From Octopus sinensis (lineage: Eukaryota), in contig NC_043005.1 of NCBI RefSeq assembly GCF_006345805.1, forward strand, positions 70,494,001-70,558,000: a stretch of 64,000 bases of DNA, given 5' to 3'. Position 1 is the first letter of the stretch. Each line of letters opens with the position of its first letter. The notes under the pieces are model-generated. The model did no database searches. It worked only from the letters and a program-made list of their open reading frames with translations, and was not told the origin of the DNA. Below are positions 4,282 through 64,000 of the stretch, piece after piece. A program made the translations under genes and the position numbers.

Positions 4282-4848
4282 TTGGGTTGTCCGGAAAGTT
4301 CTTGCAGATTTATAGTATCTTATCTTTCGACTTATTTTAGAACATGTTTGAGTCCATAAAATAGGATTTGACTACACCTCCATTTGGAGCACAGTTTAAT
4401 CTATCTTTTCGTGGAAGAAAGTTTATGTTCCAATAACCTGTGTTACTTCTGTAACCCTTTAAATTAAAAGATGAGGAACATTCATTATCGGCATTTGATG
4501 CTTTGGGAACCAGACAAAAATTGCTGCAGCTTGGCTGGGGTGACTTACCCCACCCTCCATATTCACCAGATATTACTCCTTCGGATTTCCACTTATTCAG
4601 GTCTCTGCAGAATAGTCTTAATGGTGAAAAATTCAATTCCTTAGATGACGTAAAAAGATACCTTGATGAATTATTTGCCTTGAAACCACCCCAATTCTGG
4701 GAGGAGGGTATTTTTAAGGTAAATGTAAAATGGAGACGTATTGTGCAACGAAATGGTTCAGATTTGGTTCATTAAAAATGTAATGGCAAGTATTTAGTGA
4801 CCATGTACTTTCCTTTAAAAATCGCAACGAACTTTCCGGACAACCCAA
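4282..4848 (+). mobile_element. Internally deleted mariner element with intact TIRs
   Basis: TIRs ttgggttgtccggaaagttc / gaactttccggacaacccaa, TA on both sides (4280-4281 and 4849-4850). C-terminal transposase fragment HPPYSPDITPSDFHLFRSLQNSL (4503-4775). Confidence 0.92.
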
Positions 4849-5022: not shown

Positions 5023-5061
5023 GTGAAAGTTCAGTTTTTGGGTATCGGTAAATGAGTTGTC
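5023..5061 (+). repeat. 39-bp target/TSD unit, left copy
   Basis: gtgaaagttcagtttttgggtatcggtaaatgagttgtc. Recurs at 10437-10475, 15854-15891 (1 nt short) and 20539-20577, and split by element B at 22436-22467 / 27744-27771. Confidence 0.95.
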
Positions 5062-5281
5062 TTATTTCTTTATTACCCACTAGGGGCGACATAGAGTACA
5101 CATACAATCACGAATGATGAAACAATTATGAAAATTTGGGGTCGGTTAAAAATCGAAAATGAATAATAAATCGAATGATTACACAAAGAAAAAATTAACA
5201 AAATTACAAAATGCTGTGGGGCGGGTCCGCGACCCCATGCTCCCCGCCACGACACTTAGCCTTGTGGTTTCCTTTTTCCTC

Positions 5282-10244: not shown

Positions 10245-10695
10245 TTTTTCGTGGAATGTGTGTGTGTTTTTTTTTCGTGTGTTTCAATGTACAGCAGTTC
10301 CCCTGGGTGAGGAGGGGAAAACAAAGTTTTCCTGGTTCAAAACCAGCAACAGTTCAAACAATTTTTAACAAGACAATTCAAACAGGTTTTAACACAAATT
10401 CAACAACAATATTTCACTGACAAAAAAACTCACGTGGTGAAAGTTCAGTTTTTGGGTATCGGTAAATGAGTTGTCTTATTTCTTTATTACCCACTAGGGG
10501 CGACATAGAGTACACATACAATCACGAATGATGAAACAATTATGAAAATTTGGGGTCGGTTAAAAATCGAAAATGAATAATAAATCGAATGATTACACAA
10601 AGAAAAAATTAACAAAATTACAAAATGCTGTGGGGCGGGTCCGCGACCCCATGCTCCCCGCCACGACACTTAGCCTTGTGGTTTCCTTTTTCCTC

Positions 10696-15660: not shown

Positions 15661-15891
15661 TTTTTCGTGGAATGTGTGTGTGTTTTTTTTTTCGTGTGTT
15701 TCAATGTACAGCAGTTCCCCTGGGTGAGGAGGGGAAAACAAAGTTTTCCTGGTTCAAAACCAGCAACAGTTCAAACAATTTTTAACAAGACAATTTAAAC
15801 AGGTTTTAACACAAATTCAACAACAATATTTCACTGACAAAAAAACTCACGTGGTGAAAGTTCAGTTTTTGGTATCGGTAAATGAGTTGTC

Positions 15892-18800
15892 TTATTTCTT
15901 TATTACCCACTAGGGGCGACATAGAGTACACATACAATCACGAATGATGAAACAATTATGAAAATTTGGGGTCGGTAAAAATCGAAAATGAATAATAAAT
16001 CGAATGATTACACAAAGACAAAATTAACAAAATTACAAAATGCAGTGGGGCGGGTCGGCGACCCCATGCTCCCCGCCACGACACTTAGCCTTGTGGTTTC
16101 CTTTTTCCTCCTATCTCGCATTTGTGAGGGATCTTTTACTCTCCACATTTTTCCATCTTTCATCAAACACTTTCTTACTCAGGCTCCTTCTCTCCAGTTC
16201 TATATGTCTTTTCAGGTGGAATTTAAAATATTCCACCAGACCTGAACCAGAGATGAAGTCGCCTGTTATCATCCCTTTCATCCTTGTCTTCCATACTACC
16301 TGTTTCGCAGTTGAAACCACGGCGAGAAAACAAAACTTACCTTCTTTCGTTAAGAAATCAGGTGGGCTGATTTTTACAATAGATTCGGCTGATAGCTGTA
16401 CTCTTCGTTCACCTGACATTAGTTGTTCGGCACAAGCCCACATATCTTTCACCCCCGAACACTGCACGATCGCGTGCGAGACGGTTTCCCCTTCTCGCCC
16501 ACATCTCGTACAGGTCGGGCTGACTTGGCAACCGTGCCTTGCAAGCTTGTCCCGAACAGGTAAGGCTCCTCGGTAGCACTGCCAAGCCAAAGACTTCTGG
16601 AAATTATCCAGTGTCTTCGGCCCGAATGTACGTTGGAACAGACTGGCCAGCTGATTATCGTCGAAACCTAGGGTTTCCCCTAGCGTATCATCGTTACCGG
16701 CCTCTACAAACCCTCTATAAAACACAGCGGTAGAACCACTGCCGCAGGCATTACCCGAGCGACGGAATAGTCGGAGTGCCTTGCCACACTCCGTATACCA
16801 CGTACCCAACTTCGATCTGCGATTATACCAGTCCTCCCGGCCACCGAAACTGGTGAACCTGGGGAACATCTGTTTCGCCAGCGGAGACCACACCCGTTCA
16901 CTACCCAGATGGAGCCACAGGTGCCTTAGCCTCAGCGCATTTCTGCGCATCATTAGCCACGGCATCCCTAGTCCACCCTGTAACGGTTTTTGACAGCAGA
17001 CAGAGCGTCTCACAAGCGGTTTCGAGCCCTTCCACAAGAAGCGAAAGAGCTGTCTCTCCAACTTGTTCAACCACGAATCCGGGCAAGGCACGACGGCAAG
17101 TCGGTAGGTGATCACCGATGCAATAAACACATTGGCTACCTCCGCCCTACCTTTCCAGGATAACCACCGCCAAGACCAAATCTCGACTATTGCAGCCACC
17201 TTGCTCGATACCTCGCTCCAGTTCTTCTCTATTTGGAGGTCCAGACCGAACCAAACCCCGAGCAACTTAATCGGACCCTCCGTCCAACGTCCCACGACGC
17301 TGTCTGGAGGCATCGACTTGCCTCTCCAGGTGCCGAGTTGCAAGCCGACCGACTTTTCACGATTAACTTTTGCTCCTGTCACCGTCTCGTAAACCTCTAT
17401 GGCTCTGCCTACTTTACGTAGGTGGTCCACTTCAGTCACGATGATAGTGATGTCATCCGCGTACGCCGAAACCGACATATCACGTCCTGGTTGCCTCGGG
17501 ATGCCGCTCAGTTTTCGCAGCAGCGGCTCCAGAGCCACTACATACAAAAGCGGGGAGAGCGGACATCCCTGGCGAACCGAGCGTGGTCCTGAAAAGCTTG
17601 ACACATCTCCTCGGTTCGTCTGTCAACTTACCTTGTTGGTTCGCCAGAGATCGAATTGTAGCATCGTTGCCACGTTGGGCTTCCACCACTCGGGCCCATC
17701 CGCAGCCTTGATTCCTTCGCTCCCCATCGTATGTTGTCTAGCCTGATAATGCACCCATGTGTTTGGCTTCGAGGTGCTGGTTAAGAACCAGTCTCTTGAC
17801 CTTCACCTGGTCTGCATTGCCAGTTCGCATTGCTTCCTCTAAGTCCTTAACTAGTGTAGTTACCTTTCTAGCCTCTCTAGCTACAAGATTAGTACTATAT
17901 CTAACGGACTCATATTTTATGGCTCGCTTAAGGGCATACCACCATTTGTTGTTACAAATGGAGCCGGTCATGGCCCTCTGGACTATTAACCTAATCCTGT
18001 CCCTGTACTCCTTAATCGCCAAAACAGACGTATTAAGTTTCCAGTAACCAAGACCTCTAGTTATCTTATCTACGTCTAGCCTACAGGTGACCATCTTGTG
18101 GTCACTGTAGCTGACTATATGGAGTTGTGGACTCTTAACTAGGTTCTTATCTACCTTCCTAATTAATATCCTGTCTATGTATGACTTTACCGATCCGTCG
18201 CTATTTGACCACGTCCACAGTGGAGCGCCCGGATGTTCCAGTCTATATGGATCTACCAGCTCAAAACGTCTTAGTAGATCCGGGAAGCAAGTATTTCCTT
18301 TTCTGTCTGTTCGCGAGCCTTCACAGTCTACCCGCACATCGCAGATTGTGTTGAGGTCCCCTAACATTACTACTGGGCACGATGTACTCAGAAACTTCTC
18401 CAGGTTCCGATAATAATCACTTTTCCCCTTACCGGGGGGAGCGTAAACCGCAACCAGCCTGATTGTCTTACGGCTACTGAACGTCAACTCAATGACGACC
18501 AGCCTACCTTCCGGATCTGTAAAAATCAACTTTTTCTCAGAAACCCGGTTCTTTTTACACAGGGCCAACATCCCGCTTCCGCCGACCGACGGGTTCGGAG
18601 AGATGACACTCTCGTAACCGTTGAACAGCGGGAGCAGAACTCTTGGCCCCTTTAACCGGGTTTCTGTGGCAACGACAACATCTAAATCCCGTGACCTGAT
18701 GTCATTTAGGAAGCGCCCTTGCTTCCAGCTCGCCATCAGGCCACGCACATTTATGCACCCTAAACAAATGCGAGACATTACTTACCTTTATTCCGTTTTT

Positions 18801-20538: not shown

Positions 20539-20577
20539 GTGAAAGTTCAGTTTTTGGGTATCGGTAAATGAGTTGTC

Positions 20578-22435
20578 TTATTTCTTTATTACCCACTAGG
20601 GGCGACATAGAGTACACATACAATCACGAATGATGAAACAATTATGAAAATTTGGGGTCGGTTAAAAATCGAAAATGAATAATAAATCGAATGATTACAC
20701 AAAGACAAAATTAACAAAATTACAAAATGCAGTGGGGCGGGTCCGCGACCCCATGCTCCCCGCCACGACACTTAGCCTTGTGGTTTCCTTTTTCCTCCTA
20801 TCTCGCATTTGTGAGGGATCTTTTACTCCCCACATTTTTCCATCTTTCATCAAACACTTTCTTACTCAGGCTCCTTCTCTCCAGTTCTATATGTCTTTTC
20901 AGGTGGAATTTAAAATATTCCACCAGACCTGAACCAGAGATGAAGTCGCCTGTTATCATCCCTTTCATCCTTGTCTTCCATACTACCTGTTTCGCAGTTG
21001 AAACCACGGCGAGAAAACAAAACTTACCTTCTTTCGTTAAGAAATCAGGTGGGCTGATTTTTACAATAGATTCGGCTGATAGCTGTACTCTTCGTTCACC
21101 TGACATTAGTTGTTCGGCACAAGCCCACATATCTTTCACCCCCGAACACTGCACGATCGCGTGCGAGACGGTTTCCCCTTCTCGCCCACATCTCGTACAG
21201 GTCGGGCTGACTTGGCAACCGTGCCTTGCAAGCTTGTCCCGAACAGGTAAGGCTCCTCGGTAGCACTGCCAAGCCAAAGACTTCTGGAAATTATCCAGTG
21301 TCTTCGGCCCGAATGTACGTTGGAACAGACTGGCCAGCTGATTATCGTCGAAACCTAGGGTTTCCCCTAGCGTATCATCGTTACCGGCCTCTACAAACCC
21401 TCTATAAAACACAGCGGTAGAACCACTGCCGCAGGCATTACCCGAGCGACGGAATAGTCGGAGTGCCTTGCCACACTCCGTATACCACGTACCCAACTTC
21501 GATCTGCGATTATACCAGTCCACCCGGCCACCGAAACTGGTGAACCTGGGGAACATCTGTTTCGCCAGCGGAGACCACACCCGTTCACTACCCAGATGGA
21601 GCCACAGGTGCCTTAGCCTCAGCGCATTTCTGCGCATCATTAGCCACGGCATCCCTAGTCCACCCTGTAACGGTTTTTGACAGCAGACAGAGCGTCTCAC
21701 AGCGGTTTCGAGCCCTTCCACAAGAAGCGAAAGAGCTGTCTCTCCAACTTGTTCAACCACGAATCCGGGCAAGGCACGACGGCAAGTCGGTAGGTGATCA
21801 CCGATGCAATAAACACATTGGCTACCTCCGCCCTACCTTTCGAGGATAACCACCGCCAAGACCAAATCTCGACTATTGCAGCCACCTTGCTCGATACCTC
21901 GCTCCAGTTCTTCTCTATTTGGAGGTCCAGACCGAACCAAACCCCGAGCAACTTAATCGACCCTCCGTCCAACGTCCCACGACGCTGTCTGGAGGCATCG
22001 ACTTGCCTCTCCAGGTGCCGAGTTGCAAGCCGACCGACTTTTCACGATTAACTTTTGCTCCTGTCACCGTCTCGTAAACCTCTATGGCTCTGCCTACTTT
22101 ACGTAGGTGGTCCACTTCAGTCACGATGATAGTGATGTCATCCGCGTACGCCGAAACCGACATATCACGTCCTGGTTGCCTCGGGATGCCGCTCAGTTTT
22201 CGCAGCAGCGGCTCCAGAGCCACTACATACAAAAGCGGGGAGAGCGGACATCCCTGTATGTGTGTTTTTTTTTTCGTGTGTTTCAATGTACAGCAGTTCC
22301 CCTGGGTGAGGAGGGGAAAACAAAGTTTTCCTGGTTCAAAACCAGCAACAGTTCAAACAATTTTTAACAAGACAATTTAAACAGGTTTTAACACAAATTC
22401 AACAACAATATTTCACTGACAAAAAAACTCACGTG
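20578..22435 (-). mobile_element. Tx1-type family A, copy A4, about 3.5-kb internal deletion
   Basis: Keeps the 3' 1.68 kb and the 5' 180 bp. Junction catccctg|tatgtgtg at about 22256. Confidence 0.93.
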
Positions 22436-22627
22436 GTGAAAGTTCAGTTTTTGGGTATCGGTAAATGGTTTTATTATTACCCATAAGGGGCAAACAAAGA
22501 GGGGACGATACAACCTGATGTGGGGTCAGATTCTCGGATGGGGTTACAAAAAAGATGAGATTAAAAATTAAAAAATTCACAAAATTGCAAAAATTATAAA
22601 ATCGAATGAATAACAGACCGGAAGACA

Positions 22628-25600
22628 TTACAGGTGGAGTGGGGGCGGGTTCAGCTCGGACCCCACGAGCCCCGCCTCACCACTGATACTTTGGTTTCGT
22701 CCTGATTTACATTTATGTGGTGTCATCCATTCGCAACTCCGTGCTACATCCTTCCATCGTTCTTCATACACTCTCTTAGTCAGGCATTTTCTCTCCAGCC
22801 CTATCTTCCTTTTCAGGTGGAAGATGAAGTAATTCATCAACCCAGGGCCGGATATGAACTTGCCTGACCGTATACCTTTCATTCTCGTCTTCCATATCAC
22901 CTCTTTCGCAATTGCTACCACAACGAGTAAACAATTCTTACCTTCTTTCGCGAGGAAATCTGGTGGGTCAATTTTTTTAATACACTCAGTCGACAGCTGT
23001 ACTCTTCGTGTGCTTGACAACGGCTGTTCGGCATAAACCCACACCTCAGACACGACCGAACAATGAACAATAGCGTGCGGGACGGTTTCCCTATCCCGCC
23101 CGCATCTTGGACACGTCGGACTGTCTTGGCCACCGTGCCTTGCGAGTTTATCCCGAACAGGTAGAGCTCCTCTGTAGAATTGCCATGCCAGAGACTTCTG
23201 GAAGTTATCCAGTGTCTTCGGCTTGAACGTACGTCGGAACAGACTGGCCAGCTGATTATCGTCGAGACCTAGGGTATCCCCCAAGGTGTCTTCACATTTC
23301 GCCTCTACCAACCCTCTATAGAAGAATGTGGTGGAACCCCCACCGCAGGCGTTGCCCAAGCGACGGAATAGCAGGAGAGCCTTGCGACACTCCGTATACC
23401 ATGTGCCCAGTTTCGATCTACGATTCAACCAGGTTTCCCATCCACCGAAACTAGTGAACTTGGGAAACATCAGTTTTGCTAGCGAAGACCACACCCGTTC
23501 ACCATCCAGGTAGAGCCACAGATGTCTTAACCTCAGCGCATGTTTGCGCATCATCAGCCAAGGCATCCCTAGCCCACCCTTTAACGGTTGTTGACAGCAA
23601 GTAGAGCGTTTCACAATGGTTTCCCGCCCTTCCACAAGAAGTAGAAGAGCTGTCTTTCCAACTTGATCAACCACGAATCAGGGCATGGAACGACGGAAAG
23701 GCGGTAGGTGATAACCGATGCGATAAACACATTGGCTACCTCCGCCCTCCCTTTCAGGGATAGCCACCGCCAAGACCAGGTCTTGGCTACTGCAGCCACC
23801 TTGCTCGTTACCTCGCCCCAATTCTTCTCTATTTGGAGGTCTGGACCGAACCAGACCCCTAGCAGTTTAATCGGACCCTCCGTCCAACGTCCCACGACGC
23901 TGTCAGGAGGCATCGACTTGCCTCTCCAGGTGCCGAGTTGCAAGCCGACTGACTTTTCGCGATTAACTTTTGCTCCTGTCACCGTCTCGTAATCCTCTAT
24001 GGCCTTGCCTACTTTACATAGGTGGTCCATTTCGGTTACGATGATGGTGATGTCGTCCGCGTACGCTGACACTGATTTTCCATTACCTGGTTGTCTCGGG
24101 ATGCCGCTCAGTTTTCGCAGTAATGGCTCAAGAGCCATCACGTACAAAAGCGGGGAGAGCGGACACCCTTGACGAACCGAGCGTTTGATTTTGAACGGCT
24201 TCGACAAGAAGCCGTTCACCCGAACTACCGAGTCGATGTTGTCATAAATTTGGATAATCCACCTGAGGAAGCCAAGGCTCAGCCCGAACTGTGCCAGGGC
24301 AGATACCAGGTAACGATGGTCGACCCTATCAAAAGCCTTGGATTGGTCTAAATGGACCAGTGCCCCACCCTTGCCAGAATCACTATTAAACCCCTCTATA
24401 GTGTACCGCATTAGATGGAGATTATCCTGAATGGTTCTGCCCGGAACGGCACATGTCTGTGCCTCCCCGATCAGACCATCCGCGACACGCGCCAATCTTT
24501 TCGATAACACTTTGGCCAAAATCTTCAACTCTGTGTTTAGCAGAGTGATGGGCCTGAAATTATCAATGCACTCCCCCTTGGTCGGGTCCTTTCTGAAGAG
24601 AGTCACCACTCCCCGGCGCACAGATCTGGGTATAAGCCCGTTCTGCTGCCAGTTCGCATAGACCTCCGCCAGTAGGTGCCCGAACAAGTCTGGCATACTC
24701 TTATATAACTCATAGGGTAGACCATCCAAACCCGGCGCCTTGCCCGCGCCGCAGTCCGTCGTTGCCTCAACCACCTCCTCAGGCGTGATTGGCCCTTCAC
24801 AGCCCTCCCCATCTCGCCCCGATAAGCGCGGCAGCCCGTCGAGTAGGTCCGTAAAGGCCCTCCTCCTATCCAGCCCGCCGCACTCACCGAAAAGCTGAGC
24901 GAAGTGCTCCTGAAAGGCCTCACACATCTCCTCGGGTTCGTTTATCAACTCACCTTGTTGGTTCTTCAGAGATCGAATCGTGGCATCGTTGCCATTCCGG
25001 GCTTCCACCACTCGGGCCCATCTGACGGCGTTGATTCCTTCACATCCCGTATGACGGATTCTAGCCCTGACAATGCAGCCCATGTGTTTGGCCTCGAGGT
25101 GCTGGTTTAACACCAGTCTCTTGGACGCCACCTGAGCCGCAGAGCCAGTTTTCATGGCTTCCTCTAATTCCTTAACTAGAGTAGTTTCCCTTTTAGCCTC
25201 TCTAGTCACTACTCCTATGCTATATCTAATAGACTCAAACTTGATGGCTCGTTTGAGGGCGTACCACCATTTGTTATTAATGATGGCACCAGACAGCGCC
25301 CTCTGAATTATAGTCCTAATCCGGTCTCTGTACTCCTTAATCGCCAAAAGGGACGTGTTAAGTTTCCAGTAACCGGATCCTCTATTTTTAACCTTATCTA
25401 TGTCAAGCTTACAAGTGACCATTTTATGATCACTGTAGCTGATCGGGTAAAACTGTGGACACTTAGCTATTTTACTGTCTACCTTTCTAATTAGAATTCT
25501 ATCTATGTATGACCTGGAAGATCCGTCGCTGTTTGACCATGTCCACAATGGAGCGTTCGGAAATTCCAACCTATAAGGATCTGCTAGCTCAAAGCGGCTT

Positions 25601-26103
25601 AGCAGTTCCAGGAAGCAATAGTTACCTTTTCTATCTGCATTCGAGCCAACACAATCTACATCCGCTTTGCAAATTGTGTTAAAGTCTCCTAGCACAACTA
25701 ATGAATGCGAAGTACCGAGAAAGTTTTCTAGTTCACGAAAATAATCACTTTGCCCTGTATTGGGTGCGTAAATTGCAACCAGTCTGATAACTTTACCGTT
25801 ACTGAACGTCAAATCCATGACGACCAGCCTACCTTCTGGGTCTGAAAAAATTAACTTTTTCTCAAAAACCCGGTTTCTTTTTAATAGGACCAACACCCCA
25901 CCCCCGCCTGTAGGACTGGCCGGAGAGAAAAAACTCTCGTAGCCGTCAAACAGCGGGAGTAGACCTCTTGGCCCCTTTAACCGGGTTTCTGTAGCAACAA
26001 TAACATCCAAATTACGCGACCTGATATCATTAAGGAAGCGACCTTGCTTCCCGCTTGATCCCAGGCCGCGCACATTTAAACAACCAACATAAATGTAGTC
26101 CAT
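22628..26103 (-). pseudogene. Family B ORF2 (APE/RT), frameshifted
   Basis: 830-aa ORF from MDYIYVGCLNVRGL through YADD to KGGKPL. Continues in another frame (22628-23674) with CPRCGRDRETVPHAIVHC. A probable second frameshift lies near the C-terminus. Confidence 0.93.
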
Positions 26104-26111
26104 AACTTACC

Positions 26112-32504: not shown

Positions 32505-33995
32505 TGTCTTGACAATGGTGTTACTCCAGAACAGTGGAAAACTGCCAGTGTCATCCCTCTGTTCAAAAAAGGCGACCGCACATCGCCTGTCAACTATCGC
32601 CCCGTCAGTCTTACCAGCTGCATCGCCAAACTGATGGAATCCTGTATCAGAGAAACCCTCTGGAACTTCTGGAAGTCTCACACCCTCATCCAGCCGTCAC
32701 AATTCGGATTTATTCCTAACTCCAACTGCTGTAATCAACTCATCGAGTTTCTTGAGGATGTTACCTAAATCACTGATCGCGGATCCTGGGTGGATGTTGT
32801 TTACCTGGACTTTGCTAAGGCTTTTAACTCTGTGCCACACAAAAGACTTATGGTGAAGCTTTCTGCGTTGGGTGTAAGAGACGAACTCTATAACTGGTTA
32901 AAGTCCTTTATTTTCGGCCGAAAAGAGGTTGTCACAGTTCTAGGACAGCACTCTTCGCCCTATGAGATGACATCTGGTGTGCCGCAGGGATCTGTTCTTG
33001 GCCCCCTTTTATTTGTTGCATATGTTAATGACATAGATGCCAACTTAAAGAATGCCACAGTGCTGAAATATGCAGATGACATCAAGCTGTACCTCGAAAT
33101 AAAGAGGTCAAATCCTATACACTATGGATCTCTATTGCAAGCAGACCTGGACACAATGCAGCAGTGGATCATGGACTGGCAACTCAATGTACCACCATGC
33201 ATTTTGGGAGGAGAAACCCAGCGTCCACCTACTCCCTCCACAACACTAGTCTCAAAAAGTCTTCAAGTGAACGTGACCTGGGTGTTATTGTCGACAGTGA
33301 TTTGCGTTGGACAAAACACATCGCCAAAATTGTCAAGAAGGCTGAGGGAGTCATGGCATCGCTCACCAAATCCTTTGTGAGCCGCTCTCCGGCTATCTAT
33401 CTGCGGCTTTATATAGCTATGGTAAGACCTCACCTGGAATTTGCATCACCGGTCTGGAACCCCTATCTTGCCCAGGACATCAATCGTCTGGAAGCTGTTC
33501 AGCGACGTGCAACCAAAAGAATACCCTCCATCAGGCATTTGCCATATCTTGAACGCCTTACTTCCCTGGGCATGGACACATTGAAACTCCGACGTCTGGC
33601 AGCTGACCTGGCAGACACCCATAAAATTATCAACCATCGCACAAACAATAACACCTCTTCAAACTCCACCCATCTAACACCCGTGGACATATTTACAAAG
33701 TAAGAAAACAGCACAGCTCCCATGACTTCAGGAAACATTTTTTCACGCTGAGAGTTGCTGAAGCGTGGAACAAACTGCCGGCATCGGTTGTTAGTTGTCG
33801 GAGCACTGCATCCTTCAAGACTTCCATGCTTCCTGAGATTCGCCAACACTACACTTGATTTTCTCCCCTCCATACACACACAAGCATGTTCACTTTCCAG
33901 ACATTTCTACATTACTGCATGTACTTTATATGCACTTTCTGACAAGTTGTGGTGCACCTGAGCACTGTATACAATAATTTTATTATTATATATTA
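32505..33995 (+). mobile_element. CR1-group LINE, 3' fragment
   Basis: NYRPVSLTS, QFGF, VYLDFAKAFNSVPH, SGVPQGSVLGPLLF, YADDIKLY, ERDLGV, VRPHLEFASPVWNP, QRRATK. (TTA)n-like tail. Confidence 0.92.
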
Positions 33996-34555: not shown

Positions 34556-34578
34556 TATTCACATATATACATGATAGA

Positions 34579-34810
34579 TATTTCTTTTGCTACCCACAAG
34601 GGGCTAAACATAGAGGGGACAAACAAGGACAGACAAACGGATTAAGTCGATTACATCGACCCAGTGCGAAACTGGTACTTTATTTATCGACCCCGAGAGG
34701 ATGAAAGGCAAAGTCGACCTCGGCGGAATTTGAACTCAGAACGTAGCGGCAGACGAAATACTGCTAAGCATTTCGCCCGGCGTGCTAACGCTTCTGCCAG
34801 CTCGCTGCCT
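34579..34810 (-). mobile_element. tRNA-headed SINE family 1, full length
   Basis: A-box-like tggcagaagcgttag, B-box-like gagttcaaattcc. Tail gtcccctctatgtttagccccttgtgggtagcaaaagaaata. Confidence 0.85.
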
Positions 34811-42199: not shown

Positions 42200-42640
42200 A
42201 AAATGTTTAAAATTCCGCCAAGGTCGATTTTACCGTTCATCTTTCAGGGGTCGATAGCATAAGTAGCTGTTGAACACTGGGATCGCTGTAATTGATTTCC
42301 TCCACTCTCCCGAAATTGCTGGCCTTGTACCAAAATGTGAAATCAATATAGGCACAAGCTGAGGTAAGGCGCTAGTCGAGTACATCGACCCCAATATTTC
42401 AATGCTATTATATTTTATCCAAAGCGCAGACCTGGCAGAAACGTTAGTACGCCGGGCGAAACGCTTACCTGTATTTCATCTGCTTTACGTTCTGAGTTCA
42501 AATTCCGTCGAGGTCGAATTTGCCTTTCATCCTTCCGGGGTCGATAAATTAAATACCAGTTGCGTACTGGGTTCGATCTAATCGACTATCTCACTCCCTC
42601 AAAATTCCGCGCCCTATGCCTAGAGTAAAAAAGATTATAT
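42200..42640 (+). mobile_element. Two SINE-1-related copies with a different 3' tail (42200-42345 partial, 42423-42640)
   Basis: Same head and body as family 1 (gagttcaaattcc...tttcatcct...gggtcgat), but the tail is ...aaattgctggccttgt-like. A similar copy lies at about 45385-45600. Confidence 0.65.
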
Positions 42641-44079
42641 TTTATCCACCTCGAATCGATGAAAAATACTGTCGACCTCAGTGGGCTGTGAAATAGGAAC
42701 GTCCAATCTGCTAAGACTAAAAATAACTACAGAAATAACTAAACTATATTACACATCCCTCCACCTCTTTTATCAAAAAGCTATTGTTTTTTCCAGAATA
42801 GTCTTCTTATTTGTTGAAGCACAGGAATCTTATAAAGGAAGAAAAATAAATAGGATTAAATTGCAAGCAGATGAAAACATAATTAAAACCACAGGACTTA
42901 CAAATATATGTATAACATACAGAAGTAACAATACGAGACACTGCACGAAGATAACGTAAAGTCAATAACTAAATACATTATGTAGAGTACTGTTAATTGA
43001 AACCACAATAAAATATTCCACATACACAAGTCCCACAGACCTACTGAATAATGTTGTCATGGATATACAAAACTACGAGGTGGTCATGTCTTGAATTATT
43101 TTGATCATATGTCTGATGATTCGGAATGAACCAGGTGTTGTATAATTTCAACAAAGGTTATTAATAAATAGAATTGCACAATGAATATCAATGATATTTA
43201 TTATTATTACTACAAATACTGTGATAAAATTTTCGAATAAGATTAATTAATAATGGAATCAATTATACGAATTTTAATTCCCATCACGAAAATAATAATG
43301 AAATGCAATTATTAGTTATCTCAGATTGTGAATAGGACAATACATGTTATCTAATACAACGCAAAAATACTCTTGCATCTATATATATATTTCAGTTGTT
43401 TGTTACTGATAAAATTCTATTAAAAGCGATTGAGATAATATAATGTCCAAGAAGATAAATCAAGAAAGTTTCTTTCATTTTGAATACATCAAACAAATCT
43501 ACTCTTTTTTAATTCTCTAAGACTTATGTAAAATACACAGACAATAAGAAGGCCTATCCATTGTTGGTGAACATGATGCTACAGAGGTCCATACATGCAT
43601 ACATAAATGCGTACATCGATAAGGTGTCCATAAATTATCTTTACAATTTCTATTGTATCATTGGTTGCACGCAACCGATAGAGCCCACCTGGAAGTGTTC
43701 TGATTTTTCTAATAAAACTTTATCTGCTTGCCTTATGCTTTCCAATAAACTCAACCGAGTTATTCTCATTTTCCATGTTTATAAATTTTTAAAACTCTAG
43801 AGATAATTTATGGACACTTTGTATAATCGAATGTGAGTCTTTAATTATACGTAATACTATGACCAAATCTGTTGCATAGAATCGAGACTAATTTGCATAT
43901 TCTTTATTTTTAATAGTAACGAGTCTAATCAACAAAACCTTGTCATAGATTCATTCGATATTGGGACATTTTTTGCATTGTTTTATTTATGCACAGACAG
44001 ACCATAATTCAAAAGTCATTCCTCATATTGTGCTGAAAGAGTTTAATGGTGTTTGGTTAAGTACCAGTTGCGCACTGGG

Positions 44080-44161
44080 GTCGATGTAATCGACTTAATC
44101 CTTTTGTCTGTCCTTGTTTGTCCTCTCTGTGTTTAGCCCCTTGTGGGTAGTAAAGAAATAG
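44080..44161 (+). mobile_element. SINE family 1, 3' half
   Basis: gtaccagttgcgcactggggtcgat...tttagccccttgtgggtagtaaagaaatag. Confidence 0.8.
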
Positions 44162-44407
44162 GTATTTGGATTTTGATACACCCTCGGTCTACTAAAAATG
44201 TATCATTGCTCTTCTTTACAGTAAAAATAAAGAGATGTCATCATTGTTAGCGCAATAACAACTATTACTTTATTGACCTTTCTGGTTCTAAACCTGCAGC
44301 GTCGTGACAAGGAGGACATTGTGTCTACTAGTTCATGCGCAGCTAATTTTCCCACTAAAGGGTATGAAATTTACAGTTCTATATTTAAGAGATGAGGAAT
44401 TATGTAC

Positions 44408-45314: not shown

Positions 45315-46087
45315 AAAATATTAAAAGAGCGAGCATTTGTGGTAGCATATAGATATGTCCCAATACTATTATTCGATTGTCTCAAGGCGGTGAGCTGGCA
45401 GAATAGTTACCACGCCAAGCAACAGGCTTAACGACATTTTAGTCATTTTAAAGTTCTGAGTTCAAATTGCGCCGAGGACAACTTTAACTTTCATCATTTC
45501 GGGATACCAGTTGAGTACTGGCGTCGATGTAGTCGAGTATCTCCCTTCCCCGAACTTACTGGATTTGTGCCAAAATTTTAAATTATTATTCTACTGTGAC
45601 GATGTGTTAGATTGTAACGATTTTACCAATTATGAAATGAAACATAATAATGATTTCCCAATTTGGCGCAAGACAAGCAGTTTCGGGAAAGCGATGCACG
45701 ACATTGCATCAACATCTGTGTTTCACTGGTACTTTAGTTTTCGACTCCGGAAAGACAAAAGGCAAAGTCGAGCTCAGTAAAATTTGAACCCAAACCGTGA
45801 AGACGGTCGAAGTGCCGCTTAACATTTTGCCCGGCGTGCTAATGATTCTGCAAATTCGCCGCCTTAAATAGAAAGAAAATGCGGCATTTATACATGGGCC
45901 TTATATATATATATTCTACAATAGTGCCCTGTTTACCTGTAGAGGTTAAATGAACAGCGTCTAAATACAGTGGCTAAATGAGAATGATCCAGTTTCATGA
46001 CTAATAAACTAATAATAGTCGTAAAGCAACAGAGGAAGTGTTCACTTGAACTCGGTGTTCCAGCTTTTAGCACACTTGGATCTAGAA

Positions 46088-47946: not shown

Positions 47947-48180
47947 TCTTATTTGTTTATTGCCCACAAGGGGCTAAACATAGAGGGGGCAAACAAGGAC
48001 AGACAAAGGAATTAAGTCTATTGTATCTACCCCAGTGCGTAACTGGTACTTAATTTATCGACCCCGAAAGGATGAAAGGCAAAGTCGACCTCGGCGGAAT
48101 TGAACTAAGAACGTAACGGCAGACGAAATACTGCTAAGCATTTCGCCTGGCGTGCTAATGTTTCTGCCAGCTCGCCGCCT
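47947..48180 (-). mobile_element. SINE family 1, full length
   Basis: Matches 34579-34810. Confidence 0.85.
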
Positions 48181-52252: not shown

Positions 52253-52288
<36 letters not shown>

Positions 52289-52478
52289 GCTTAGCGGTAT
52301 TTAGTCTGCTGTTACGTTCTGAGTTCAAATTCTGCCAAGGTCGACTTTACCTTTCATGCTTTCGGGTTCGGTAAATAAACACCATTTACGCACTGGGGTC
52401 GATGTAGTCGACTCAATCCCTTTGTCTGTCCTTGTTTTACCCCTCTATGTTTGTCCCCTTGTGGGCAATAAAGAAATA
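52289..52478 (+). mobile_element. SINE family 1, 5'-truncated
   Basis: Body and tail ccccttgtgggcaataaagaaata. Confidence 0.82.
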
Positions 52479-52749
52479 TATATATATATAAGTATAGTCA
52501 TCACTAAAGTGACATAGGGTGCTATTCAACATCAGCATTGCTAGAAATAAGACCCAATACTACTCTTAGGCTGTATTCCTGCTGTACTATTTCACCACAA
52601 CTTTCTCTCACTCTTTCTTCTGTTGGCCAGCTCGCTTAGCCAACAGGGTGGCATCATTTGAAGGCTAAAACAATGCGAAGCGCATTGTGACCAGTGATGT
52701 GTAGCAACATCTGATAGCCTGGTCGGTGATAGTGACGGTGATATGTATG

Positions 52750-54560: not shown

Positions 54561-55721
54561 TGGTTAAAGGTTTTGGCTAAAGCACAGCAATTTAGGGGAT
54601 TAAGTTAAGTCGAATTACATTAACCCTAGGACACAACTGGTACTTATTTCATCAACCCTAGAAGGATTAAAGGCAAAGTTAACCCTGGCAGAATTTGAAC
54701 TCAGAATGTAAAAATGGGCAAAATGCTACTAAGCATCTCGACTGGCATAGTAACAACTCTTCCAGCTCGTAACCTGAAAGGCAGTTAAATATTGCAAATA
54801 TATTTTTCTGTTACTATAACGCAGAATCACACCAACGATTAAGCTATGCAACATCACTCAGAAATAGCTACTAGTCTCGTTTCATATCATATTCATCTGT
54901 ACTAAACTCAGATAAGGTATACAGGGAAGTATAGTCTGAGAGATACACTATTTTTGGAAGCAGAAAAAGCACAAACAAATAAAAAACATTGAAATGAAAT
55001 GACCATATTTGAAATGCTTTTCATTATAGGTCTACATGAAGAAAATTGACCTGGGGTTAAGCAACAACAACAACAAAACCAATAAAACTATTATCAATAG
55101 AACTCTAATTTAAATGGGAAATTTAATTTGTTTCATTCACAGTAACTCTTTCATTCCTTCATTTGGAATATTTAAGATGAAGATATTAAAAATATTAATT
55201 AAACTCGTTTTATTTTTTTCAAAAGAGAAGAAACCTTTTAAAAGTTCATTAGACTTCTTTCTTTCTATTTTCCTCTTCTATCTAAATTCCAAATCTTGTA
55301 TGCTACACTTAATATTTTACAACTTAAAAATCTTTAGTTTAGCAGAGAGGTATTCAAACATGTGGTTTATAGGCTGCATGTGTATTTATGTATGTGCAGA
55401 TTTATACACATTCTCTCTCTCTCTCTATCACTCACTCTCATGCATGCATACGCATATAAACACACATGCATGTACACATAATCATACAGATCTGAGACCA
55501 ATTCTTCTAAACATTTTCTAGTTCATTGCATCCATGCCACTTCACCTCCTCTCCAGTTCCTCTTACCTCGTTCCTTGGAACACACAAATTTGTTGCACAC
55601 CAGTACAGATAATGTTTTCATTAGTATGAGAGCATAAATGTTAATGAAACATAATAAATTACAGTTAACTGACTCCATCTTTGTAGGATTTGAACTCACT
55701 GCTATATAGACATGAGGAGGA

Positions 55722-61334: not shown

Positions 61335-61568
61335 CTTATTTCTTTATTACACACAAGGGGCTTAACATAGAGGGGACAAACAAGGACAGACAAAAGGATT
61401 AAGTCGATTACATCGACCCCAGTGCGTAACTGGTACTTAATTTATCGACCCCAAAAGGATGAAAGGCAAAGTTGACTTTGGTGGAATTTGAATTCAGAAC
61501 GTAACGGAAGATGAAATACTGTTAAGCATTTTGCCTGGTGTGCTAACGTTTCTACCAGCTCGCCGCCT
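61335..61568 (-). mobile_element. SINE family 1, full length
   Basis: Tail on the plus strand: cttatttctttattacacacaaggggcttaacatagaggggac. Confidence 0.85.
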
Positions 61569-63605: not shown

Positions 63606-64000
63606 CTTATTTCTTTATTGCCCACAAGGGACTAAACATAGAGGGTACAAACATGGACAGACAAAGGAATAGAGTCGATTACATCGACCCCAGTGTGTAA
63701 CTGGTAGTTAATTTATCGACCCCAAAAGGATGAAAGGTTAAGTCGACCATGGCGGAATTTGAACTCAGAACGTAACGGCAGACGAAATACCTATTTTTTT
63801 ACTACCCACAAGGGGCTAAACGCAGAAAGGACAAACAAATAGATTAAGTCGATTACATCGACCCCAGTGTGTAACTGGTACTTAATTTATCTACCCCGAA
63901 AGGATGAAAAGCAAAGTCGACCTCGGCGGAATTTGAACTCAGAACGTAATGGCAGACGAAATACGGCTACTCATTTCGCCCGGCGTGCTAACGTTTCTGC
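63606..64000 (-). mobile_element. Two head-to-tail SINE family 1 copies (63606-63790 truncated; 63791 to the window end)
   Basis: Two consecutive bodies, junction gacgaaatac|ctattttttt. Confidence 0.85.

Follow-up and report, generated by a model that had tools for sequence, protein, structure and literature searches.

A block of ~30 nt at the 3′-terminus of a LINE in Octopus sinensis is repeated at the end of an abundant SINE, and the question raised by this locus is whether the enzyme of one LINE lineage recognizes the block and so mobilizes the SINE in trans. The window, the 64 kb of DNA analyzed here within the 2.72 Gb of genome searched, contains minus-strand LINEs arrayed head to tail (positions ~4,900-27,500), among which one unit, designated family B, is followed by four family-A units. 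The latter have a period of 5,415 bp, in agreement with the mean insertion of ~5.4 kb of L1-Tx1 elements, annotated as active, in O. vulgaris (PMC13282606). One family-A unit has an internal deletion of ~725 bp and in another, with a truncated body, the 5′-UTR is joined straight to the RT region at position 22256. The units are set apart by spacers of 11-20 nt with a CGAT end, and comparable arrays are present elsewhere in the genome, for example at C9:76607185-76624030 and C3:123738319-123766052. The ORF2 of both families encodes an Exo_endo_phos endonuclease, RVT_1 and a C-terminal zf-RVT (Pfam), and the two are 73% identical over the C-terminal 300 aa (BLASTP). Human L1 ORF2p is the best relative of solved structure (E 1e-62), with R2 proteins far weaker (~1e-23), and a weak zinc knuckle alone was seen in ORF1. 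The top named protein match is from the octopod Argonauta hians (61% identity), and no Tx1 record was present among the named matches of this homologue search, which contained almost no named proteins. Based on architecture and similarity, the lineage is assigned to the L1-group and, with the site-specific insertion documented below, is probably Tx1-type.

The boundaries of the elements required some revision. The ~195 bases (~100% identical) downstream of the A and B tails do not belong to their 3′-UTRs but are a spacer with a CGAT end followed by the start of the next family-A element. In all eight loci read, genomic copies of this stretch (its positions 22-203) adjoin LINE-A 5′-sequence, and the stretch is therefore the 5′-UTR of that element; the same eight loci rule out that it is a common insertion target. 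The spacer between B and the next LINE, CATTTACCGAT, looks like the remnant of a target-site duplication with a CGAT end. Nor is the remainder of the A and B 3′-UTRs unalignable, as had been stated, because a second common block, GC-rich and reading GGCGGGG…CCCGCCCC, is located directly after the stop codon. This GC-rich stem is kept in A, B, D and further families, and the SINE does not have it. An unrelated plus-strand RT ORF fragment (RVT_1, E 5e-22) is present at positions 32769-33380, near the SINE at 34579-34809. There is also a 563 bp element at positions 4284-4846, ~190 bp past the last LINE of the array, that is perhaps a mariner-like MITE and has perfect 18 bp inverted repeats, GGGTTGTCCGGAAAGTTC, at its ends. 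This motif resembles GGTTTGTCCGAT of the T1 target described below, and the flank plus the 563 bp repeat also follow LINE tails at further loci. The coordinates of the features in the window are listed in Table 1.

Table 1. LINE and SINE features located in the 64 kb window
Feature	Coordinates	Strand	Sequence and basis
Family B ORF2 (endonuclease, reverse transcriptase, zf-RVT)	22628..26106	-	Split by a frameshift, 22628-23677 + 23611-26106; Pfam, ORF list
Family B 3′-UTR	22468..22627	-	ORF end 22628; conserved GC-rich stem near stop, tail hairpin at end; alignment with A, folds
GC-rich 3′-UTR stem after ORF2 stop	22640-22690 (B), 10640-10690 (A, copy 2) and equivalents		Alignment, folds
Family B 3′-tail module (D-type)	22466..22506	-	GTCCCCTCTTTGTTTG-CCC-CTTAT-GGG-TAATAATAAAAC; element end 22468
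Spacer between B and next LINE	22457..22467	-	CATTTACCGAT; junction alignment, compared with filled and empty T1 sites
Family-A LINE 5′-UTR	22262..22456	-	ACCCAAAAACTGAACTTTCACCACGTGAG…; fused to truncated A body at 22256; outside the tail of B
Family A tail, copy 4	20577..20617	-	…CTCTATGTCG-CCC-CTAGT-GGG-TAATAAAGAAATAAG; covariance model 57.2 bits; alignment
Family A tail, copy 3	15891..15931	-	Covariance-model match; alignment
Family A tail, copy 2	10475..10515	-	Covariance-model match; alignment; 41/49 vs SINE tail
Family A tail, copy 1 (last unit of array)	5061..5101	-	Covariance-model match; alignment
Full-length SINE, tail 34578-34620 (copy quoted in the initial annotation)	34579..34809	-	BLAST to consensus 1-231, 94.8%; model match
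Full-length SINE, tail 47948-47990	47948..48179	-	~15 bp duplication TAAGAAATGCAAAAA / TAAGAAATATAAAAA; model match
Full-length SINE, tail 61335-61377	61335..61567	-	Consensus alignment; model match
SINE dimer, tails 63790-63832 and 63606-63648	63606..64000	-	First unit cut by window edge; second = positions 49-233
Tail of 5′-truncated SINE (44057-44160)	44120..44162	+	Consensus alignment; model match
Tail of 5′-truncated SINE (52287-52478)	52438..52480	+	Consensus alignment; model match
Other-tail SINE families	42429-42700, 45386-45600, 45703-45863, 54605-54769		Tail …CCCC..AA.TT…GCCTTG.GCCAAAATTTGAAA… then (ATT)n

The B and SINE elements compared are both on the minus strand, and plus-strand text quoted from them is the reverse complement of their 3′-tails; the B element ends at position 22468 as …GGGTAATAATAAAAC, or in a longer reading as …GTCCCCTCTTTGTTTGCCCCTTATGGGTAATAATAAAAC. 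The global alignment of positions 22478-22506 with the SINE copy at 34591-34620 has 30 columns, of which 27 are identical, in agreement with the count by eye, and a single gap. When aligned locally with the SINE consensus, B has 36 of 41 columns identical and A has 41 of 49, including all of the last 14 nt, consistent with the earlier description of B as the better match to the inner, and A to the outer, part of the SINE tail. Over each whole ~5 kb LINE (A, B), the SINE tail aligns best, in local alignment, to the 3′-terminus, with a score reached by none of 300 shuffled queries, and the homology thus lies at the very 3′-ends of the two elements, as in known LINE/SINE pairs with a common tail. 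LINE A and the SINE have a common defined 3′-terminus with no poly(A) tail in the genomic copies. Among present-day LINE families, none was found with a tail exactly that of the SINE, the best being ~85-90% alike.

The genome was searched with the C-terminal 300 residues of the family A protein, and the best 131 of 30,741 first-look candidates were scored. These 131 places range in identity from 100% down to 72%, and many have intact ORFs of 1,131-1,135 aa. The 3′-ends of ~50 genomic LINE copies were inspected and all have the module, so that the proposal of a conserved 3′-element holds across the lineage, in every LINE family sampled, with 73-100% aa identity to A (C-terminal 300). The module has a 3-4 bp stem, a loop of 4-6 nt and then AATAAAGAAAT in A-type or AATAATAAAAC in B/D-type tails, with the fixed terminus, AAUAAAGAAAU or AAUAAUAAAAC, respectively, directly after the stem. 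The A-like families end …TCTATGT(C/A)G-CCC-loop-GGG-TAATAAAGAAAT and the D-type families (the 73-75% identity group, within which B falls) end …GTCCCCTCTATGTTCG-CCC-CTTGT-GGG-TAATAATAAAAC. Genome-wide, there are 76 matches, versus one for a control, to the pattern TCATTCGTGAT-N18-46-AATAAAGAAA, which is anchored by a LINE-specific UTR motif, and 40 matches to a D-type tail pattern. The two tail types are not strictly separate. Several A-like families have a B/D-like inner GTCCCC(C)TCT(A/G)TGTAGCC together with the A-like end AATAAAGAAAT, one example of a family with both B-like inner and A-like outer features reading GTCCCCTCTGTGTAGCCCTTTATGGGTAATAAAGAAA, and one copy was found in which D-type sequence precedes an A-type end. 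Judged by its sequence, the SINE tail falls within the tail diversity of this LINE lineage. As LINE families that combine B-like and A-like tail features do exist, the suggestion that the SINE tail came from a third or ancestral member of the lineage is reasonable and remains plausible.

The small hairpin predicted upstream of the A-rich end is backed by compensatory changes in its stem. The three bases that precede [T/G/C]AATAA pair with three bases located 4-6 nt upstream, and this 3 bp stem is often lengthened by a G-U or G-C pair. The stem (5′-arm/3′-arm) is CCC/GGG in most families, ACC/GGT in three (loops GTAT, TTTAT and TTTTT), CCT/AGG in two (loops GTTAT and TTTAT) and TCC/GGA in one, and in the SINE the flanking G-U pair is replaced by G-C. 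For 15 distinct tails aligned with MAFFT, 90% of the cells pair, versus 44-52% with slid partners, and four pairs are changed on both sides, a result matched by 0 of 500 shuffles. MAFFT places the gap of the ACC/GGT families within the stem, and pairs were therefore counted also on an alignment fitted to a covariance model. This model, built from the MAFFT alignment, identified 71 tails in 299 kb of sequence, namely every LINE tail, including that of B (50.5 bits, E 2e-10), and 17 SINE tails. In the resulting alignment of 71 matches, which is biased towards the structure, 92.8% of the cells pair (34-65% when slid) with eight double-change cells and again 0 of 500 shuffles matching; with related sequences, the controls for both pair counts are not equivalent to probabilities. 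The stem has only 3-4 bp, and the compensatory changes correspond to approximately three independent events. An outer interrupted helix (UCUaUGU with AUAaAGA) was also drawn by RNAfold in the A-like families and the SINE. It hardly varies and B/D-type tails do not have it, and it is considered a possible structural element of the A-type families.

The SINE consensus (~233 nt, from window copies) ends …TTGTTTGTCCCCTCTATGTTTAGCCCCTTGTGGGCAATAAAGAAAT(AAG) and the window has 12 SINE segments, seven of which retain the tail. Abundance was evaluated from pattern counts and from 80 kb of arbitrarily chosen genome sequence, with the 27-nt SINE tail pattern TTAGCCCCTTGTGGGYARTAAAGAAAT having at least 81,317 exact copies in the genome and its control none; among the 100 matches listed, GGGTAGTAAAGAAAT is the commonest tail variant. 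A sample of 38 young copies was picked by exact head and tail words, and 27 of these are bordered by direct repeats that exceed the 99th percentile for mismatched flank pairs. The duplications of these young copies measure 11-26 bp (median 16 bp), and 24 of the 27 clear ones begin 0-3 nt past …AAAGAAAT; the base that follows AAAGAAAT is A in all 38. Between the upstream duplication and the first GGCGGCG of the SINE, the 38 copies have 0-6 extra bases, often A or AA. The duplications in the young copies are AT-rich and mutually unrelated in sequence, confirming that the SINE is dispersed. LINE A ends …GGGTAATAAAGAAAT with its duplication directly after, and the comparison of duplication lengths that had been recommended as a check found the two similar, with a median of 16 bp for the SINE versus 18 bp for LINE A. 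Short duplications, or none, are usual for RTE- and CR1-type insertions, which counts against machinery of these types. The element is short, non-coding, present in very high copy number and flanked by target-site duplications, as befits a SINE. No tRNA or other RNA family was called in the SINE or its tail by ARAGORN or by Rfam in gathering and E-value modes. The head has a B-box-like motif, GAGTTCAAATTCC, recognized by eye only, and the body may be a Deu-type domain. Octopus SINEs have been annotated as tRNA-Deu and tRNA-Core (PMC8967140), and it is from this annotation plus the B-box-like motif that the description of the SINE as tRNA-derived is taken.

Other SINE families have positions 1-166 in common with this SINE (72-90% identity) but have a different tail with an (ATT)n end. 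The last ~67 nt of the SINE therefore constitute an exchangeable module, and the (ATT)n-tailed families presumably depend on another LINE clade. SINE dimers and multimers are also present, in which units beginning at SINE position 49 (TATTTCGTC…) are attached to a full unit with the end GGGTAGTAAAGAAATAGG, and there are tandem runs with a period of ~185 bp, including one at C1:8970294-8971811 with seven tails in 1.5 kb.

LINE and SINE insertions differ in their targets. Family A is site-specific, with 15 exact 3′-junctions at one nucleotide position of T1, a ~560 bp repeat that has 281 sites in the genome, often in tandem or inverted pairs. At these junctions, the family A end, …GGGTAATAAAGAAAT, directly precedes TGGCATGGTTTGTCCGAT. 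The empty site reads …GGGTGTC[TGGCATGGTTTGTCCGAT]GTTACAG… and, as the filled sites have this 18-mer on both sides, the target-site duplication of LINE A is 18 bp. Repeated insertion at one such site would produce the CGAT-ended spacers of the arrays. The T1 insertion site lies within an imperfect palindrome (CATGGTTTGTCCGAT / ATCGGACGGGTATG). Tx1L of Xenopus similarly inserts at one position of repeated Tx1D units with a long target-site duplication but, to our knowledge, has no described SINE partner. The flanks of D-type copies fall to ~60% into a few recurrent sequences, of which T6 is the commonest 3′-flank, and ~40% are unique in the sample. Different subfamilies have different recurrent 3′-flanks, indicating that target choice changes fast in this lineage. 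With duplication lengths in agreement, the SINE is nevertheless absent from both targets. Versus the 15 LINE-A junctions, no SINE or D-type tail abuts T1, no SINE tail among the 81,317 matching the 27-nt pattern abuts T6, and the CGAT end of the LINE-A junctions was not found in the SINE duplications of the young copies. A preference of the SINE for the LINE-specific target, the feature that identified the SINEU/Tx1-Mar pair, was therefore not found at T1 or T6. The idea that the target-specific LINE families seen here drive the SINE is not supported by these results, which indicate that the site-specific families are not its direct drivers.

We consider it quite probable that the block is the 3′-terminal recognition module of this L1-group, probably Tx1-type, LINE lineage and is taken in trans by the SINE. 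By analogy with stringent-type LINEs, the LINE ORF2 protein would recognize the hairpin on its own RNA and target-primed reverse transcription would initiate precisely on the terminal AAAU, no poly(A) tail being involved. The SINE RNA, which ends in the same ~45-50 nt module, would then be taken in trans by an enzyme of the LINE lineage, and such an enzyme is compatible with the identical terminus and the similar duplication length (18 vs ~16 bp). The B-inner/A-outer mosaic of the SINE tail would be explained by descent from another or older member of the lineage, and the driver would be a member with relaxed target choice, the SINE now occupying at least 8x10^4 dispersed AT-rich sites. Counting against this explanation, no LINE family was found with the exact SINE tail, the well-sampled families are site-specific and there is no SINE at T1 or T6; as the driver, a relative with relaxed target choice is more likely than a bypass of specificity in trans.

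The site-specific Tx1-type LINEs might, alternatively, supply the reverse transcriptase for the dominant dispersed octopus SINE, with target choice uncoupled from template choice, although we judge this unlikely. Endonuclease specificity would have to be bypassed or relaxed in trans, or short-lived non-specific members repeatedly spawned that fuel bursts of SINE insertion and, if true, this would be the first stringent 3′-tail SINE partnered with Tx1-type elements that yet escapes their site specificity. It seems improbable that A and B/D, the site-specific LINE families of the window, themselves drive the SINE, which would escape their target specificity by pairing of its RNA end with AT-rich nicks or through less specific integration in trans. 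The terminus AATAAAGAAAT is identical in A and the SINE, the duplication lengths are similar, ~40% of the D-type flanks are unique in the sample and, with intact copies of ORF2 (1131-1135 aa) in both A and D, both families are probably active now, as judged from their coding sequences. Set against this are the absence of SINE tails from T6 and of SINE and D-type tails from T1, where LINE A has 15 junctions, the unrelated, AT-rich SINE duplications that do not have the CGAT end of LINE A, and the fact that target choice in Tx1 and R1-type elements is set by the endonuclease. SINEU elements, furthermore, retain the target of their Tx1-Mar partners (PMC4494074).

There is also little probability that the conserved terminus is mainly a polyadenylation or 3′-processing signal, AATAAA plus a hairpin, for the LINE mRNA that was inherited by a SINE recognized in some other way. 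AATAAA does not vary in either tail type (AATAAAGAAAT or AATAATAAAAC), and the hexamer may double as the poly(A) signal of the LINE mRNA. Such a role cannot, however, explain why reverse transcription starts at a fixed position or why the SINE has retained the block. Genomic copies have no poly(A), reverse transcription starts at a fixed base after AAAGAAAT, the stem upstream of the hexamer covaries, and a Pol III SINE needs no such signal and yet 81,317 copies keep the block exactly. Very improbable is a transfer of sequence with no present dependence. On this view, a piece of SINE 3′-sequence was acquired by an ancestor of the LINE lineage, or the SINE tail is a relic, and the SINE owes its mobility to a LINE clade unrelated to this lineage (RTE, CR1 or Dong/R4, which are abundant in octopus). 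In its favor, RTE, Dong-R4 and CR1 each cover a larger share of the O. vulgaris genome than does L1-Tx1 (supplement, PMC13282606) and no exact-tail LINE was found. Against it, the common block extends to the final 3′-base of the LINE and of the SINE, the SINE duplications of 11-26 bp match the 18 bp of LINE A, and there are SINEs in which the same body is combined with another tail, as would be predicted were the partner determined by the tail.

The sharing of tails by SINEs and LINEs is textbook knowledge, with a stringent reverse transcriptase that recognizes a 3′-stem-loop and copies in trans a SINE with the same tail (Kajikawa & Okada 2002; PMC4176376). In the eel UnaL2/UnaSINE1 (Kajikawa & Okada 2002) and zebrafish ZfL2 (PMC4176376) systems, as here, the last ~50 nt are common to SINE and LINE, a small stem-loop is located just upstream of a fixed terminus, and reverse transcription has a defined start without poly(A). 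UnaL2 and ZfL2 are, however, L2-clade elements that terminate in short tandem repeats, whereas the octopus LINE is L1-group with the terminus AAUAAAGAAAU, and recognition, demonstrated experimentally for UnaL2 and ZfL2, is inferred for the octopus LINE. Plant and green-algal L1-clade LINEs with partner SINEs (Ohshima 2012, PMC3472496; PMC3747384) likewise have an L1-group enzyme, a compensated 3′-stem-loop and, as in octopus, SINEs with the same end, but these lineages are from other kingdoms and are not site-specific, in contrast to the several fixed-site families and head-to-tail arrays in octopus. In crocodilians, a Tx1-type target-specific LINE, Tx1-Mar, with a repeated element as its target, was proposed to be the driver of SINEU (Kojima 2015, PMC4494074). 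That link is a common insertion target, Mariner-N4_AMi, with the SINE keeping the specificity of the LINE (PMC4494074), whereas the octopus link is a common tail and the octopus SINE, unlike SINEU, is not at the tested LINE targets. Insertion of Xenopus Tx1L in Tx1D is given as a citation within PMC4494074.

In the literature searched, with Repbase and Dfam outside its scope, there was no report that ties a cephalopod SINE to an L1/Tx1-type tail, and a full-text literature search with the tail and SINE sequences returned no match. Stringent 3′-recognition in the L1-group has been reported for plant and green-algal L1-clade LINEs (PMC3472496) and, by analogy, the octopus lineage would add an animal example. 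It also poses a puzzle, in that the sampled LINE families are site-specific and the SINE is dispersed. SINEs are the largest class of octopus repeats, ~11-12% of the O. vulgaris genome, and approximately three quarters of the O. vulgaris SINE sequence is classified as 'Unclassified SINE', with no LINE partner; in the 2026 O. vulgaris annotation, 1,279 of 1,317 SINE families are unclassified (PMC13282606). An L1/Tx1-group LINE lineage, tied to a SINE of which no fewer than 81,000 tails are intact, would be a candidate engine of the octopus-specific SINE expansion.
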